64,000 nucleotides of DNA from Salpingoeca rosetta (GCA_033442325.1 JAWQFM010000021.1:76290-140289), one strand, 5' to 3'. Positions 39,620 to 48,123 are shown, counted from the first letter of the stretch. Made by a program: numbers and translations. Notes: generated from the sequence alone by a model not told the origin.

Positions 39620-40348
39620 CGTGCGTGTGTGTGTGTGTGCGTGTGTGTGTGTCGTGCGCACCAAGTTCTTTGGCCTTGGCTTGGATGTGCTTCACAAAGT
39701 GCAAGTAGTTCCGCAGCTTGTACTGTCATTGGTTAGGGAGGAGAGTGGGATGGCGTCATGTTAGGTCGCGGACAACAGGAGCAATGACACAAGAAGACAC
39801 ACTTGCACACAGTCGCAAACACGCACGCACACCACACACACACACACACAATACACACTGACAAACACACACTGACAAACACACACACACACACACAGGT
39901 ACGCACAAGCGCGCATGCACGCTTACGTCGATGGGCTGACAGGACGGAATGGCGAGCATGGCCTCATCACTCATGAACGGCGCTCGGGGATCCAACGGTG
40001 CAAGCACGGCAGATGCCGTTGCCGGGCCAACCTAGTTGCGATCATGTTCGATTGAAAAAGACGCCAGTTAGAGGTCGCTCTCACCTCCAGCATCCCTCAA
40101 CCGACAACACCAAACACAACCACACGTACCCCTTTCAACTTTGTCAGGTGGTTGATTGCCTTCTCAACATTGGGCATGGCAGCAAGCGCTGCTGTGGAGC
40201 AATCTCTGCAACGACAATGTCAACCGACACACACATGTGAGTGGATGGGTGAGGCTGCAAACAAATGAGGCTGTGACATGTGTTTCGCACGCCTCCACTG
40301 ACAAAGAAAGAGTGAAAGAGAGAGAGTGAGTGAGTGAGAGAGACAGAC

Positions 40349-40426
<78 letters not shown>

Positions 40427-41052
40427 GCACACACAAATACACACACACAAATACACACACACACACACAAATACACACACACACAAATACACACGCACGT
40501 ACACGTACACACCCGCACATACACATACATGACGAGCTGCTCGTCGTTCTGTTTGACAAGTCGCATCAAGGGCCTGAACTTGCCACGCGTGATCTTCCAT
40601 TCCATGATCTTTTCCAACTCAGGCTTTGTCACGTGCGGCTTGTCCCGCTTCATGGCAGCAGGGCGGAGATCCGTCCACATCCACGCGTCCAGCTCCAGCA
40701 AGCGATGGTGTTTCTTCTTCTTCTTTGTTGCCACTGCGTTGATGGCTGCCTCATAGCCGTCCTCAGCCGCCCGCCATGCCTTCACGTCCGCTGTCTTCCA
40801 CAGCTGCTTTGCTGTCCGCACGACACCAGCATCGCCGTCCTTCACAACCTGCGCCTGCTCCACATGGGTCCTGTCATCACCGCCATCAGCATCAGCAGTC
40901 GCAGCATCAGCAGCAGCGCTCGCCTCCCTCTTCGCCCGCTTCGGCCTCAGCCCTTCTCTTCTTCCCATCGTGTTGTCGTTCACACTCGTTTTGGCGCGTT
41001 TGGGAGGACTTTCAAGGAGCGTCAAGCAGAATGCACCAAACGTGTTGCCCAT
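39390..41052 (-). CDS. Amun-like protein with a helix-hairpin-helix DNA glycosylase-type fold (start uncertain: 40968, 41052 or 41061)
   Basis: LLELDAW..HVTKPELEKIMEWKITRGKFRPLMRLVKQN, then spliced exons give LTKLKG|VGPATASAVL..APFMSDEA and WTCERVGRALW. This matches the Amun/HhH family pattern as I recall it. Confidence 0.75.
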
Positions 41053-41227
41053 CCTCCACATGGCTTCCACTCCTCTCTGCTCACTGATTCATCATTCATT
41101 CGTTCAATAACAGGGCCTACAGCGTCTCCCTCAACCGGCAAGGGAAGAGCAGGAGCAGGATCAAGTAATGGCAACAAGCAATGTAACACAAAAGGAAACT
41201 AAGGCACAAGCAAGCAAGCACGTCACG

Positions 41228-44200
41228 TCACACGCGGCCAGCACCAGGTGGCTTCGGTTTCGGCTTTGGCTTCGGCTTCGGCTTTGGCCTTGCTCCTGGT
41301 CGGGACGATGCCTGCTGGTGCCGCTGCCGCTCCTGTTGCTGGTGGTGCTGGTGCTGTTGTTGTTGTTGTGGATGGGTGGTTGCGGCCATGGCTGGCTTTG
41401 TTGGCTTTGTTGGCTTGGGCGGGCGTGCCTTTGGTTGGGAGGCGCCAGCTGTCGGTGCGCTGGGCCGCGACGACGGCCTTGCTGGTGCGTCACGCTGGGC
41501 GGCGTGTGTAGCGGGTGAAGTTGTTGCCACCGCCGCTGCAGGCCTCGCTGGCTTGCTTGGCTTGCCTTGTATCGGCCTCTCACCCCGACTTGGCCGACGT
41601 GCGGGCCGTGATGGCTTCGATGGGCGCGGGGCATCGCGATCGCCACCGCTCTTGAACACGAGCTTGCCGTGCTTCGGTGGTGGAGCAGCTGGGCGCCCGC
41701 CAGCGGCAGCACCGCCGGATTTGGCGGGTGAGATGCGACGCACATAGTTGCCGGGCACCAGCCCTCGCTCAGCACCGCGGCGGCAGTGCAGCCAGCCACC
41801 CTCCTCGCCCTCAACCGTCAGGATTGTGCCGCGCGCGACCGTCAGCTCCTCGCTGTTGGTCGCTGTCCAATCGTACATGCACGAGACCTGATATGCCTGT
41901 CCGGCCTGCGTGGTGTGTTCGACAGTGGTAGCAGACGCAGCATCGCCTCCCTCCACGTTGTCGTACGAGTGCACGTCATCGTCGTCGTCGTCGTCCACAA
42001 CCGACTCTGCAGTCGTCACCTCAGCCAGGCGAACAGAGGGGCGCCGCGTGCGTCCGCCCCCATCTGCCAGGGGAGTGACATACGTGGCCGGGATGTAGCC
42101 AGCGCGCCCATCGCTGCACGTCGCATACCACCAATCCGCGTTGCTCTTGTCCGTGACCACAACCACGTCGCCGTCCCGCAGTGACATGGCGCCTTCGTGC
42201 TCGGCCATGTATGCGGCCGTGGCACGGTACCTCTCGCCACCCGACGTCTCCTCGCCACCGCCGCCCGCCCTTGCTGCTGACGACGGCACCATAGCAGCCT
42301 GGGCCTGGGCCTGGGCCTGGCGACGGGGCGATCGTGGGGCCGCCACAGGTGTCGGTTTCGCCGGCCCGCGCGCTGACAATGTTGGTGCTGTTCGTGCTGC
42401 TGCTGTTGTTGGTGCTGCTGTTGTTGTTCTTGTTGTTGGTGCTGGTGCCGGGCGCACAGGGGCTGGGCGAGCAGGTGCGTGCTTGGCGGCACCCGTGTGC
42501 TTGGACGTGTTGACGGCGTCGCTGCTGCCCATCGCTGACACGAGCGGGTTTGGTCGTGGTGCCGGTGCAGGCCCATGTGCATTGGCGGTAGTGGTGGCCG
42601 CAGAGTATGCGCCGCCGGTGAACGCGCTGTTGTCGTACGTGGTCATTGTTTGGATGGTGGCCGGGGTGTGCACGCCACGTGCAGCTGGACGTGACGGCGC
42701 ACGCTTCTGCCCGCCTTGGTTCATGCTCTTCCACCCTTTGCTTGCACCGCCAGCACTACTGCTGCCGCTGCTGCTACGGTTGCTGTCACGCCTGCGGTAC
42801 AAGATGATGGCCACGAGAATGGCGAACACGAGCACGCCTGCAACAACACCGCCGATAATGGCGCCCGTGGATGCTCCGCTGCCGTTGGAGGAGGTGGACC
42901 CGCTCGTCACCACACCAACGACGCTCACGTCTGCTGCCAGCTGGCTCGACAGTGCAGCCGCAGCCTCTGTCACCGCCGTCGCCAGCTTGCTGTCCTTCAC
43001 GGATGATGATGCAACCACAGCCCGGTACGCGCGCGTGTCTGATGCGACCTCTCGCCTCCTTCGGGCAGAAGAACTGCTGCCACTGCCGCTCGCTGCCTGG
43101 CTGGTGTCAGCGGCGGCACGCGCAAACGACGCGATGAAGATGGACGGGTCCACGACAGTGCGCATGGCGGTGAGCACGGTCGACTGGAAGGAGGCGTCCG
43201 AGGCCGCGGCAACGCCAGCGATGCCGGCCCGCGTGGTGTTGAGTCTGATGTCAACCTCGACGCCGCAGCACTCCTCCGTGACTGAGAGGGCGCCACACCG
43301 GCTGCCGTTGCCCATGCGCTCATGCATGATGGACCGCTGGCGCGTGCGGGTGCACTGGCTGCACTTGCTCCAGTCGGACCACCCCGATTCCAGGCAGTCA
43401 CGCCGCGTTACGGAGCACACGCCAAACCAGCACTGCGTCACCGTGCCGGCAGCAACATCTGTTTCGTCGCTGGTGCACGTGGTGCCGTCCGCGACAGGCA
43501 GCAGCTGACACGTGCCATCGCCGTTGCACTCGCCAACACGAACCGTCCCCGTATCATTGTTGCTCGCTGACGATGCTGATGATGATGATGATGATGATGA
43601 GGATGACGACGACGACGACGCAGGAACCAGGCATGCGTCAGCGGTTGCGCAGCCCACGGCAGGGTCGCACGGGACGGGGCACGATGCCTGCAGGCACGGC
43701 TGCGTGCGCGTGTCGGAGAGCCCAAGCTGCGCGCACGACCTGCCGCCGAATCGCTCCTCAACACACGTGCGCGTGGACGTGGTGATGCCCTCGCCGCATG
43801 TGGTGGAGCAATCTGACCACGACGACCACTGGCCACACATGCAGTCCTCGGGGCATGGCGTGACATCCTCGCACGAGCGCGTCTGGATTGGAGCGAGGTT
43901 GAGGTCCTGGCACGTGGCACCGCCGTGCTGCGCGTCCGTGCATGTGCGCGAGCGCGTCTCAATGCCGCCTTCACCGCACGACACGCTGCAGTCTGACCAG
44001 CCAGACCAGTTGTTGCACTCGCAGTCCACAGGACACGGGTCCTCATTACACGTCCTCGTCTCTGCGTCGTCCAACCCAAGCTCTGCACACGTCGCGCCGC
44101 CAGCCTGCTGCGGCTCCGAGCACACGCGCGTGCGGGTCTGCTGGCCGCCGTTGCACGAGGCAGAGCACGCTGACCAGGACGACCACGACGTGCATGTGCA

Positions 44201-44481
44201 GTCCGTCGGACACGCGTCTGCATTGCACGCCTCCACGTCTGCTGCTGGCTCGTCACCCACGCACAATTGGTCGCCCTGCGTCCCGTCTGTGCAGCGGCAC
44301 GACCATCCACGCTCGCGCGTACCGCCGCCACAGGGAGCCGAGCATGCGGTGAAGGCTGCATCCTGCTGCCATTCGCAGTACACGGCGTCGCTGTTGCCGC
44401 TGGAACCGCCGCAGCCGCCCGGCCCACACGCATCACACGCGCCCTGCTCCGTGCACTGAAGTTTGGAGATGGCAGGTGGAG

Positions 44482-44554
<73 letters not shown>

Positions 44555-47422
44555 TTTGTGCTCTTTGTGTGAGAGAGTTTGGGGTGGTAACGTAACCTGA
44601 GGTGTGGTGACTACACAAACCCAAGCAAATATGCAACACCATCACGTCCTGCAACAACTTCACACACACACACACACACGGACGCGTACGCATTCACATC
44701 AAAACACCTTCCCGCATATCTCCGTTTCTACTCCCGCACTCACCATGCCCTGTTCGTCTGCGGGCGTGATGCATGGAGTGGTTGCTGGTGCGCGCTCGCA
44801 GGGTGCGTCCGCATCCCACACCAGCGTTGACGATGTGCCGCACTGGCCAGAGTACGGGTAGCAGCCGTTGTCGTTGGCACACGCGCGCACGCATGGGTAG
44901 TTGCGCAGGGAGCACCCAGCGAGGCCTAACGCCATGCGGCAAAACGCCTCGTGGATGTGCGAGCACGTGCCCTGAAAGCAGACGGCGCGGGTTGTGTCGG
45001 CGCCATCAACAAGGTCGCACGAGGTGCCATCCGGGAGCGGCTCACCACGCGGGCACTCGGCAGTCTCACCATCGCACCGCTGCTCGTCAAGACACGGGGT
45101 GGTCGGGTCAGCGCCCCTGCACAGGGTGCCCTTGGGGCGAAGCGTACCATCCGCATTGCAGCACGCGCCGCCAAACCGGCACGGGTCTGGCTGGAGGAAG
45201 CAGCTGCCCTTGGCGGCCACAACCGCCGTGATGTCTTCCTTGGAGCAGGGCGAGAAGAGATATGCGTTGTCTGCCTGCAGGTCGTTGGTGATCTCCGGGA
45301 ACATGACATAGGGGCCCCCCTGCGCGTCAGACGGGTAGCAGCGGTGCGACCCAGGCGTGGAGGAGCAGGAAGGGATGCGCCCACCACCACACAGGACGGT
45401 GCTGCAACAGTCGTGGACTGCCCCCGCGTTGTGGCCAATCTCGTGCGCAGTGACCAGCACCGTCTGCATGAGCGGGACGGCGCCGGCGGAACGCGTGGTC
45501 GAGAACCCCGTGTTGACGACATACGGCCTGCAGCAGTTAGTGGATGGGGGATGGATGGAGAGATTGGACCGGTTGGAGTTGGATGCAGTGTGGTGAGCAG
45601 AAACATGCAGTGGAGGGGGTGTGGGATGGTGTGTCACACTCCACATCAGAAAATGACTAGCGGGTCATTGTCTGCGCACACACTCATGCACATGCACATG
45701 CACATGCACATGCACATGCACACACATGCACATGCACACGAACATACACACACGTATACACACATCCCCACATACATTCACACACATCCCCACATACATT
45801 CACATACATTCAAACACACACACGCTCGCGCGCGGGGAAACTCACTTTCCGCTGTTGGTGAAGATGGTGTATGAGCAGATACCGCCGGCCGTGCGTTCGT
45901 CTGTGGAGCCGCGACTGGCAACACCAAGCGTGCCGCCCGCATCCGTGTGCGTGAAGAAGTGGTTCAGGCACACCTGTTGCGACGTCGGCTCGCCAGCGCC
46001 ACGGACGCGCTTCGTGGCCCCTGCTGCAGCCCCCTCTGCCAACCACTCCTGGTATGACCTCAGGATGGTGTTTGGGTCTTCGGCGGCGCTGTCCCCCTGC
46101 GGCAAACCAACCGCCCCGCCCGTGTAGAAGATGCCTCGGATTTGGAACGAGATGGGGCTGCCACCAAAGTTGCGGTTGTCGTCGTACACGCCATCAACGA
46201 GGTGCAGAATGTCGACAATTCGCGCCTCCGTCTGTGCAAACTGTCGGGCGGTGCACAGGTCGGTGTCCTCGTCGGGCCAGCAGTCGCCGCCCCACGCCCG
46301 CAGGAAGTTCACGTCGTAGTCCACGTATACGCTGCAGATGGTGTGGTCTGGTGACGGTGGGCCCTCGCGGCGCTGCCGTGCGCGTTCGCCGCCGTTGCCT
46401 TCGTCGCTCGGTGGAGTGCCGGGGCCGGTGCTGATATTGGTCTGTGCAATGTCTGCCGTGTGGGGGTGTGCCAGGGACATGGGCTGAAACGCGATGTCAT
46501 GCACGTGCGTAACACACGCGAGCACACCCCTGTCTCCGTTTGCTGCGGGTGTTGCTGGGCGGATGGGCGGTTCAATGGAGTATCGGTCTGCACCGACGCG
46601 AGCCCAGCCCGTGACGCGGCCCGCCTCCCACGACAGCGACACACGCGCATGTGAGTCTTCGGGGTCGCTTGCTGCAAGTGCGTTTAAGTGGTGATTGTGT
46701 GTGTGTGTGTAAGCGAGTGAGTAAGCGAGTGATTGTGTGTGTGTGTGTGCGTGTGTTTGGGGCTTGGCTTGTACGTGCACGTGAGTTTTCGTCTTGTGAC
46801 GGAGGATAGCGTGCACACAAATTACATTGGATGGCATATTCACGGGTCCAATGAGCTCATTAATGGCAAGCAACGAAGCACACACACACACACACCACAC
46901 ACACACACACACACATGCACACACACACACACACCTTCAAAGCCGCTGAGCCAAACAATGTCTGGGTGCAGCGTGGCGCGCGTGTTTGCTTCGCGGTGCA
47001 GGATGTGGTTGTGGTCGCGCAACACCAGGGTCAAGATTGCCCTGTGGCATTGGGGGGGGGAACGATACGTGTGAGGTTGAGACGGTGCATATGCGAGGCG
47101 TACGCACCAAGGTGCAGGACTAGCATGCGCGATTCTGGGCAGCAGCCACAATGAGGCGTGATCCGCTCAGGGCAGGGCAGACACAGGAGCCCTCTCCACC
47201 GTACGTGTTGCTGTCGATGTCCATCAAGGTCACGGTCAGGGGCCCCGATCGCTGGGTGCTGTTCGAGTACGCGCCACCACGAGGGCGATCTTCGTACACA
47301 AGGCGTGTAAGGAGGGCACCGTCGTGCTCACAGGATGACGGCGGCAAGATGGCAGCATGCGTCACACACAGGGCGCAGGCGAGAACGACCAACGCCGCTG
47401 CAGCGCGCAACGTCGTGGCCAT
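41228..47422 (-). CDS. ADAM10/17-like metalloprotease-disintegrin with TSP1 repeats, TM helix and two cytoplasmic SH3 domains (~1,720 aa)
   Basis: Five phase-consistent exons: 47422-47205, 47041-46935, 46671-45846, 45527-44744, 44455-41228. Order: signal peptide, prodomain, furin site RARQRR, HEIGHNAGAVHD with Met-turn YVMFP, disintegrin/Cys-rich region, five TSP1 repeats (WSSWSACSASC..TRTRVC), TM AIIGGVVAGVLVFAILVAIILY, and two SH3 domains (DWWY..GYIPATYV; GGWL..GLVPGNYV). Confidence 0.9.
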
Positions 47423-48123
47423 GCCTCGTGCGGTGTTGATGGCGTGTGTGTCTCTCTGTTTGTCAGTGTGCTTGTCTGCGTCTGCGTCTGCGTCTGTGTG
47501 TGTGTGTGTGGATGTTGATGGCGTCTGCGTCTGTGTATGTGTATGTGTGTGTGTGTGTGTATGTGTGTGTGTGTATGTGTATGTGTGTAGATGTTGATGG
47601 CGTGTGTGTGTCTGCCTACGTCTGTGTCTGCGTGGCTCTCAATAACGGGTATCAGCGCTGCTGTGGTCGCTCGGGTGCTGTGACAGCGCTGCGTTTTGCT
47701 GCTTGTGTGCTGGAGAGAGGAAAATGACTGCGGGTGTGGGGTTGTGTGTGCGTGTGTGTGAATCAAGGCATCAACCCGACCGGCGAGTTCGTTCCAAGTT
47801 CCTGTCGCTGTTGTCTTCGCCCCCACTGCTGGTGTTGTACGTCAATTAATTGTCACAATGCTCATTCACAGCAACGCACATCGCTTGCAGGCACCAGCAA
47901 CCAACCAAGCACGACGGACTTGTTCCTCCTCCTCCCCCACAACCAATCGAGTGCTGAGGAGGCGTTGGTGGTGAGAATGCGCGGCGTGCCGCAGATGTTT
48001 TGTTACATCTTCCGCCAGTTTTCAGGACTGCCACCAACAACAAGGGTAAGGCAACAAGGGCAAGCAAGAACGAAGAAGAAGCGCTGTTGGGCCACTGTCA
48101 AGACACGAGCACAACAGCTCGTG

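Follow-up and report, generated by a model that had tools for sequence, protein, structure and literature searches.

In animals, Notch, EGF-ligand, and cytokine signalling are under the control of sheddases of the ADAM10 and ADAM17 type, whose regulation by SH3 adaptors bound to the cytoplasmic tail is still poorly defined. In the ADAMTS proteases, ancillary thrombospondin type 1 repeats (TSP1 repeats, or TSRs) act as exosites for substrates or matrix. ADAMTS proteases have been treated as conserved throughout Metazoa (Ozbek et al. 2010, PMC3002383), and the ADAM gene family has been listed among animal-specific families (Richter et al. 2018, PMC6040629); fungal ADAM genes were found to be closest to metazoan ADAM10/17 (Gazave et al. 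2009, PMC2770060). The ADAM10 tail is reported to be regulated through SH3-domain proteins that bind to it (PMC4103893), and choanoflagellates are known for signalling proteins whose domains are combined in ways not met with in animals (PMC3082566). Here, we analyze a gene of the choanoflagellate Salpingoeca rosetta that lies on the minus strand, at 47422-41228, of a stretch of 64,000 nucleotides (GCA_033442325.1, JAWQFM010000021.1:76290-140289), referred to below as the window; all coordinates are those of the window unless another scaffold is named. A protease, TSP1 repeats, a transmembrane helix, and SH3 domains are encoded by this single expressed gene and carried on one spliced transcript. 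On balance, the product is probably a type I membrane zinc metalloprotease of the ADAM10/17 kind that belongs to a choanoflagellate-specific radiation and serves as a surface enzyme with a built-in SH3 adaptor. An earlier account of the window, made without knowledge of its origin and called here the sequence-only reading, had taken the gene for a protease-receptor chimera.

The gene extends from an ATG at 47422 to a stop codon at 41230-41228, and the reading of its open reading frame (ORF) and splice sites gives five exons, with GT-AG borders throughout and a clean ORF of 1,720 codons. The region has a G + C content of ∼58-66% and its introns are short and rich in (CA)n/(GT)n, giving it a eukaryotic character. 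Exon 1 (47205-47422) holds the start codon, the signal peptide, and the start of the prodomain, as judged by ORF and hydropathy, and its joint with exon 2 (47204/47040) is seen in RNA. Exon 2 (46935-47041, 107 nt) encodes the prodomain segment ILTLVLRDHNHILH...WLSGFE, and is supported by GT-AG borders, frame, RNA depth, the length of a transcript contig (X4, below), and homology. The remaining prodomain, the RQRR site, and the N-terminal half of the catalytic domain are encoded by exon 3 (45846-46671; Reprolysin_5, E=3.5e-8; an ADAM17 match over CLNHFFTHTDAGGTLGVA). Exon 4 (44744-45527; Reprolysin_2, E=2.6e-16; ADAM17, E~1e-9) holds the zinc site, a Cys-rich insertion, the Met-turn, and a disintegrin-like/Cys-rich region, and runs in phase and without a stop into exon 5 (41228-44455), a single unbroken ORF from the first TSP1 repeat (TSR1) through the SH3 domains. 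In the sequence-only reading both the start and the stop codon were placed correctly, as was the 44744/44455 junction, and that reading was also right that everything from the TSP1 repeats to the SH3 domains lies in one uninterrupted exon. Its exon set omitted 47041-46935, and RNA reads together with homology to relatives show that there are five exons, not four. A four-exon model without exon 2 is likewise in frame; because the reading frame alone allows both models, the matter was decided from RNA and homology. The prodomain motif W[YF]xGxVxGxxxSxVR, which the prodomain alignment shows to be common to the window protein and ADAM17, straddles the exon 2/3 junction and thereby validates exon 2.

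Transcript data were placed on 41480-47470, with ∼26% of each raw RNA-seq run sampled. In two raw runs the exons are covered and depth is zero in the intron bins 44480-44679 and 46680-46879; first mates lie nearly all on the plus strand, which in stranded libraries of the usual kind points to minus-strand RNA. The joint 45526/45845 is found in raw reads (one and four) as well as in contigs. Seven raw reads of X18 and contigs of both X4 and X5 contain the joint 47040/47204, which proves exon 2. The protease-to-TSP1 joint, 44455/44744, occurs in contigs from two different studies (X4, depth 151; X5, depth 8). A 2,885-nt contig of X4 is intron-free and consists of 43630-44455, 44744-45526, 45845-46677, ∼100 further letters, and 47204-47470, and the further letters correspond in length to exon 2. 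This contig is spliced mRNA in which exon 1 and the first TSP1 repeats are linked. The SH3 domains, the transmembrane helix, the stalk, and the fifth TSP1 repeat fall within an X5 contig that follows the genome colinearly from 41480 to 43562. Among the listed records none crosses the intervening poly-Ser tract (43563-43629), which is repeat-masked in read placement; continuity between protease and SH3 domains across it is argued from the uninterrupted ORF and from even coverage on both sides. A low-complexity coding stretch of exon 5 (42291-42455) is also repeat-masked, and short-read contigs end at the poly-Ser tract. A further X5 contig (depth 5.3) joins 47108 to 46671 on the minus strand through an alternative GTGCGT donor, keeps an in-frame TAG at 47122-47120, and omits exon 2. 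This form probably reflects either a minor isoform that is non-productive or an error of assembly. The earlier proposal of one gene is borne out by contigs that join the TSP1 exon to all of the protease exons, and the 44744/44455 junction, for which the sequence-only reading had sought RNA-seq support, is among the joints that they contain.

It is very improbable that the gene model is an artefact in which an ADAM gene and a separate TSP1-transmembrane-SH3 receptor gene, lying head to tail, have been misjoined. Such an error might account for the sampled raw reads, where the 44455/44744 joint falls below the listing threshold at a local depth of 2-6, and for an RNA depth that is ∼3-fold higher in the 3′ half, an excess that 3′ bias or transcription from an internal start could also produce. 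The artefact is largely refuted by the occurrence of the joint in contigs of two studies, by the intron-free contig over 43630-47470, and by the stop-free, in-phase passage from exon 4 into exon 5. The same fusion is also present in transcriptome proteins of four other named species and in two further proteins from Logan contigs (P0122/P0262). Evidence of another kind comes from scaffold L001, which holds an N-terminally truncated marine metagenome relative (P0138: disintegrin-like/TSR region, transmembrane helix, two SH3 domains). Here, a single ORF (L001 1251-7307) runs from the Met-turn through a disintegrin-like region, divergent TSRs, a transmembrane helix, and two SH3 domains to a tail of PPPPRKP repeats; a short distance upstream, at 918-1169, is the exon with the zinc site. 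The joining of protease and SH3 domains within one ORF is therefore confirmed independently of splice models. By eye, the tail end of the L001 ORF has about seven tandem KPVLSSKPPPPRKP-like repeats, which are dense candidate SH3 ligands near the two SH3 domains.

The N-terminal part of the protein has the features of a membrane ADAM in the broad sense. A hydrophobic N-terminus, detected by hydropathy, marks a predicted signal peptide at residues 1-24 (47422-47351, minus strand, as for all of the features that follow). A furin-type site, RQRR, at residues 207-210 (46378-46367) aligns with RxRR/RxKR of the relatives and of animal ADAM17. The zinc site HEIGHNAGAVHD (residues 412-423, 45445-45410) is a complete HExxHxxGxxHD motif in sequence and alignment, and the Met-turn YVMFP is present downstream of it. 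These observations agree with the signal peptide, prodomain with furin site, and intact zinc motif that had been noted from the sequence. Catalytic analyses were run on exon pieces and on relatives; both Reprolysin_5 and Reprolysin_2 are above their Pfam cut-offs, and H/E/H/G/H and the Met of the Met-turn are invariant in family alignments. A Cys-rich insertion, CCSTVLCGGGRIPSCSSTPGSHRC (45410-45340, residues ∼424-447), lies directly after the third zinc-binding His; it is common to most of the aligned choanoflagellate proteins and absent from animal ADAM17.

Several comparisons identify the type of protease to which the head belongs. Among structures in the PDB, the two catalytic exon pieces match only ADAM17/TACE. 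A profile of the clade, built from 15 relatives and extending from the catalytic domain through TSR1, scored 151 bits against ADAM17 (E=4e-43) and 120 bits against ADAM10 (E=1e-33). The catalytic domains of ADAMTS-5, ADAM8, and ADAM33 reached ∼18 bits with the same profile (E=0.005-0.01), those of ADAMTS-5 and ADAMTS-4 gave 16-18 bits (E=0.008-0.04), and the maximum for any catalytic domain outside ADAM10/17 was ∼22 bits. Because the profile gives 151 and 120 bits in one case and ∼18 bits in the other, the catalytic head is classed by sequence as ADAM10/17-type and not ADAMTS-type, as the sequence-only reading had it. There was no match to PF01421, the ADAMTS-type catalytic family, on the window pieces, and Pfam scans of these pieces detected no ADAMTS Cys-rich or spacer families. 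The suggestion that the protein merges ADAM and ADAMTS features consequently holds for domain composition but not for the catalytic domain (∼18 versus 151 bits) or for the Cys-rich and spacer families.

The protein is also distinct from ADAM17 itself. In a catalytic tree of 33 rows (LG+C20), which included no labelled ADAM10 or ADAMTS sequence, the animal ADAM17-type group and the choanoflagellate-type sequences fell on opposite sides of a split with 100/99 support, and on this basis the clade looks like a lineage-specific radiation. The membrane-proximal domain of ADAM17 (PF16698) had no match in any window piece and was present in a ray ADAM17 (P0222) and a coral protein (P0192). By these sequence criteria the window protein is not an ADAM17 orthologue, and the idea of a ‘pre-metazoan sheddase’ ancestral to the animal enzymes finds no support in a clade that stands apart from the animal group. 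The region that follows the catalytic domain is less easily assigned: Pfam Disintegrin gives 23.4 bits, below its cut-off of 35.1; the clade profile picks out the disintegrin/Cys-rich region of RVV-X (E=7e-7) as well as fragments of ADAM17 (E=7e-4) and of ADAM10 (E∼0.01-0.03), and the Cys pattern is kept across the clade. The disintegrin/Cys-rich region proposed from the sequence thus survives as homology at the level of family profiles only.

Exon 5 begins with the TSP1 array. Repeats 1-4 (residues 676-906, 43673-44365) individually score 23.6, 48.1, 41.3, and 40.6 bits against Pfam TSP_1, each above the cut-off. The first is of the ADAMTS type, without WxxW (TSP1_ADAMTS, 25.7 bits), and repeats 2-4 are canonical, with WSxWS and CSxxCGxG. 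A poly-Ser linker and a small Cys-knot module follow (residues 907-1001, 43388-43672); these were read from the sequence and belong to no Pfam family, and the pattern of the module, C...DGT.C...C..G.CS, by eye resembles that of the disintegrin-like region. A divergent fifth repeat (residues 1002-1041, 43268-43387) is below the Pfam cut-off (TSP_1, 16.9 bits versus 21.6; TSP1_spondin, E=7.4e-7) and is recognized by a local TSR profile at E=1e-9. The earlier count of five repeats is accordingly secure for four, with the last a divergent member. Beyond the array are a Cys-free juxtamembrane stalk (residues 1042-1176, 42863-43267), of which a 131-residue piece matched no Pfam family, and a single transmembrane helix (residues ∼1177-1199, 42794-42862; Kyte-Doolittle peak 3.06). 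By hydropathy the helix is the sole internal hydrophobic segment, as previously claimed, and it is followed by basic residues, YRRRD.

A second furin-type site, RRRR (residues 1110-1113, 43063-43052), lies in the stalk ∼65 residues outside the membrane, and ectodomain release could occur there. This raises the possibility that the protein works as an analogue of ADAMTS, with cleavage at RRRR freeing a protease-TSR ectodomain into the matrix and leaving a transmembrane-SH3 stub behind. The position of a tetrabasic site within a Cys-free stalk would suit this, but stalk and site have no counterpart in any of the relatives compared, tetrabasic runs arise by chance in Arg-rich sequence, and the AlphaFold predicted local distance difference test (pLDDT) score of 40 for the stalk is uninformative; we regard such a mode of action as unlikely. 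A SEA-like or Notch-HD-like fold of the stalk, with the furin site in a loop, was considered and dropped, given the lack of a Pfam family, the lack of a homologue in relatives, and the same AlphaFold value.

The cytoplasmic tail comprises residues 1200-1720 and the stop codon (521 amino acids, 41228-42793), is rich in Ala, Pro, and Arg, and contains both SH3 domains. SH3-1 (residues 1387-1442, 42065-42232) scores 46.1 bits against SH3_1 (cut-off 22.9), with the p47phox SH3 as its best match among solved structures, and SH3-2 (residues 1501-1554, 41729-41890) scores 38.4 bits against SH3_9 (cut-off 30). Residues of the ligand groove are AAY, WW, and P..Y in SH3-1 and MYDW, W, and P.NY in SH3-2, and both domains are canonical and predicted to bind proline-rich ligands. 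The tail also has 16 PxxP motifs, 12 of which fit a class I/II consensus, compared with 7.1 +/- 2.4 in 500 shuffled sequences (z ~3.7). Because class I/II motifs are enriched in the protein's own tail, self-interaction through the SH3 domains, in cis or in trans, is a reasonable prediction. The two SH3 domains described earlier are thus both above the Pfam cut-off, and they are indeed built in cis, on the same polypeptide as the TSP1 repeats and the transmembrane helix.

The sequence-only reading had presented the protein as a protease-receptor chimera. An exhaustive search of 1.84 billion representatives, made by HMMER with exon 4 as the query, returned only 141 proteins at E<=0.001, and the top named matches are all choanoflagellates. 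Among them are Craspedida sp. UC1, which has the closest relative protein, Mylnosiga fluctuans, Salpingoeca kvevrii, S. urceolata, Microstomoeca roanoka, Hartaetosiga gracilis, and Monosiga brevicollis; acanthoecid matches are from Diaphanoeca, Didymoeca, Stephanoeca, and Bicosta. Animal ADAM17 was matched weakly (E=3e-5). The window protein is not a singular chimera but one member of a diversified choanoflagellate clade, in which cytoplasmic SH3 domains occur in at least four other named species and in environmental sequences. Architectures of the relatives were determined with Pfam and local profiles. The Craspedida sp. UC1 protein (P0121) has Reprolysin, TSP1, a transmembrane helix, and three SH3 domains; the Logan contig proteins have Reprolysin, TSP1, a transmembrane helix, and SH3; M. 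fluctuans (P0123) has Reprolysin, Disintegrin, a transmembrane helix, and SH3; and S. kvevrii (P0153) and S. urceolata (P0169) each have Reprolysin, a TSR, a transmembrane helix, and SH3. Three of the relatives with a transmembrane helix and cytoplasmic SH3 also have a Pfam TSP1 match. Other members depart further from this plan. An ENA metagenome protein of 1151 amino acids (P0141) belongs to the same ADAM clade and has a transmembrane helix followed by a cytoplasmic SH2 in place of SH3; such a tail would allow the protease to bind phosphotyrosine. Exchange of C-terminal modules seems to be the way in which the clade diversifies. In proteins of S. kvevrii (P0127) and from JGI (P0207), malectin domains, or a SUEL lectin plus a PAN module, accompany the shared ADAM head.

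A TSR stands directly after the Cys-rich region in ∼20 of the matches, with cysteines that do not vary across the family alignment; for this reason the head-plus-TSR combination is probably ancestral to the choanoflagellate clade. The window gene is distinctive for its expanded array, with 4-5 TSP1 repeats compared with 0-2 detected in most relatives. For the SH3 tail the history is less clear. In the 33-row tree, SH3-tailed members fall into at least three sub-lineages and are interleaved with complete members that lack SH3. An approximately unbiased (AU) test rejects a single clade of SH3-tailed members (p=0.0003), for a group that was chosen after viewing the tree and with several of the ‘non-SH3’ rows being fragments. 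Identity among the SH3 domains of the family is only 20-40%, and they are not clearly nearer to one another than to generic SH3 domains; those of animals are matched by SH3-1 no worse than those of the relatives. By sequence, an ancestral tail followed by losses is indistinguishable from repeated gains, and the association recurs in either case.

Relatives in public databases are unnamed or annotated as ‘hypothetical’ proteins, and a search of the full-text literature, whose coverage excludes most subscription journals, turned up no account of an ADAM that combines TSP1 repeats with SH3 domains in the cytoplasm. The clade is apparently a conserved, undescribed choanoflagellate family of the ADAM10/17 type. 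An ESM Atlas feature search with the closest relative returned scores that were all <=0.80 and no named cluster combining Reprolysin and SH3. Word-index searches were uninformative: one with the family alignment recovered three matches and missed seven of its eight own members, so that blanks in these searches are not evidence of absence; one with the tail gave no match, probably owing to low-complexity words, and one with the ectodomain was swamped by multi-TSP1 proteins, the window protein itself not being among the matches listed. Among the labelled matches of the exhaustive search, the two animal proteins (the ray ADAM17 and the coral protein) do not show the architecture, which agrees within that scope with the earlier remark that it is not known from animals. 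The sequence-only reading had itself allowed that the protease exons and the 41228-44455 exon might prove to be separate genes, or the architecture to be already described and common; contigs join the exons and no description was found, but the architecture does recur in other choanoflagellates. No paralogues of the gene were found within the window. The next ORF downstream (40144-41070, minus strand) encodes a Lys/Ala-rich product that runs into Cys/Val repeats derived from (CA)n.

The domain order suggests how such an enzyme might work. A proprotein convertase would cut at RQRR and activate the zymogen, and the active enzyme at the cell surface would cleave membrane-proximal or matrix substrates. 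The TSP1 array may serve as an exosite for docking on substrate or matrix, as do the ancillary TSRs of ADAMTS. Within the cell, the SH3 domains would bind proline-rich partners, either the protein's own tail, leading to self-inhibition or clustering, or cytoskeletal or endocytic proteins. Localization and activity could thereby come under cytoplasmic control, exerted by a kind of adaptor that in animals is a separate protein, bound by the ADAM in trans. From these domains we infer SH3-scaffolded sheddase and signalling-receptor functions. A bolder and doubtful extension is that the SH3 domains and PxxP tail form a self-interacting multivalent module, through cis closure or trans clustering, so that a surface sheddase is gated from inside, and that the ADAM10/17 head with its TSR may preserve a state near the common origin of the ADAM10/17 and ADAMTS designs.

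Proteolysis might alternatively be secondary to a role as an adhesion or matrix receptor, in which the TSP1 repeats bind ligand, the SH3 tail signals or anchors actin, and the protease is self-processing or vestigial. The expanded TSR array and the long tail rich in SH3 and PxxP are as would be expected of a receptor, and the exchange of the tail for SH2 and the addition of lectin modules in relatives fit receptor-like diversification. Across the clade, the window protein included, there is nevertheless no variation in the zinc site, Met-turn, or furin site, from which selection on catalysis is argued, and a mainly receptor role seems rather unlikely. The reading of the protein as a surface protease with a built-in SH3 adaptor has its own difficulties, which weigh against it. 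At the level of RNA these are the reliance of the protease-to-TSP1 joint on contigs, the unbridged poly-Ser tract, and the higher depth in the 3′ half. At the level of the protein, SH3-1 has Ala for the second Tyr of ALYDY, the tail of the window protein, unlike those of P0121, P0123, and P0138, is alone in showing a clear PxxP excess over composition, and the prodomain alignment contains no conserved, alignable Cys that could act as a cysteine switch.

In the closest relatives of animals, a conserved family unites the protease with its SH3 adaptor in one polypeptide and adds TSP1 repeats to the ectodomain, and it shows that the combination of protease and TSP1 is not exclusive to the animal ADAMTS. 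This family offers a natural, simplified system for studying how cytoplasmic SH3-proline interactions steer ectodomain shedding. The degree of surprise is moderate, as choanoflagellates are already known for odd domain combinations and the relatives were already in public databases.

The window protein can be compared with several known systems. Like animal ADAM17 and ADAM10, it has type I membrane topology, a shared prodomain motif with an aligned furin site, and the same catalytic subtype; the disintegrin-like/Cys-rich region thereafter is comparable at the level of family profiles. Unlike ADAM17, it has TSP1 repeats at the position of the membrane-proximal domain and shares with its clade the Cys-rich insertion after the third zinc-binding His, and its tail differs from those of both animal enzymes in carrying SH3 itself and not merely PxxP. 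With the animal ADAMTS it has in common the order of a reprolysin-superfamily protease, a disintegrin-like region, and then TSP1 repeats, and TSR1 of the window protein and its relatives matches Pfam TSP1_ADAMTS best or solely. In contrast to ADAMTS, it is predicted to be membrane-anchored (residues 1177-1199), not secreted, and its TSR comes after a disintegrin/Cys-rich region of the ADAM10/17 type. The pairing of a proline-rich ADAM tail, here with 12 class I/II-like motifs, with SH3 domains recalls the animal ADAM tails and their trans-acting adaptors, except that both partners are on one polypeptide. Finally, the way in which this lineage has shuffled extracellular modules and cytoplasmic signalling domains resembles that of choanoflagellate receptor-type signalling proteins such as the Monosiga tyrosine kinases (PMC3082566), with the difference that the shuffled core in the window clade is a protease and not a kinase.

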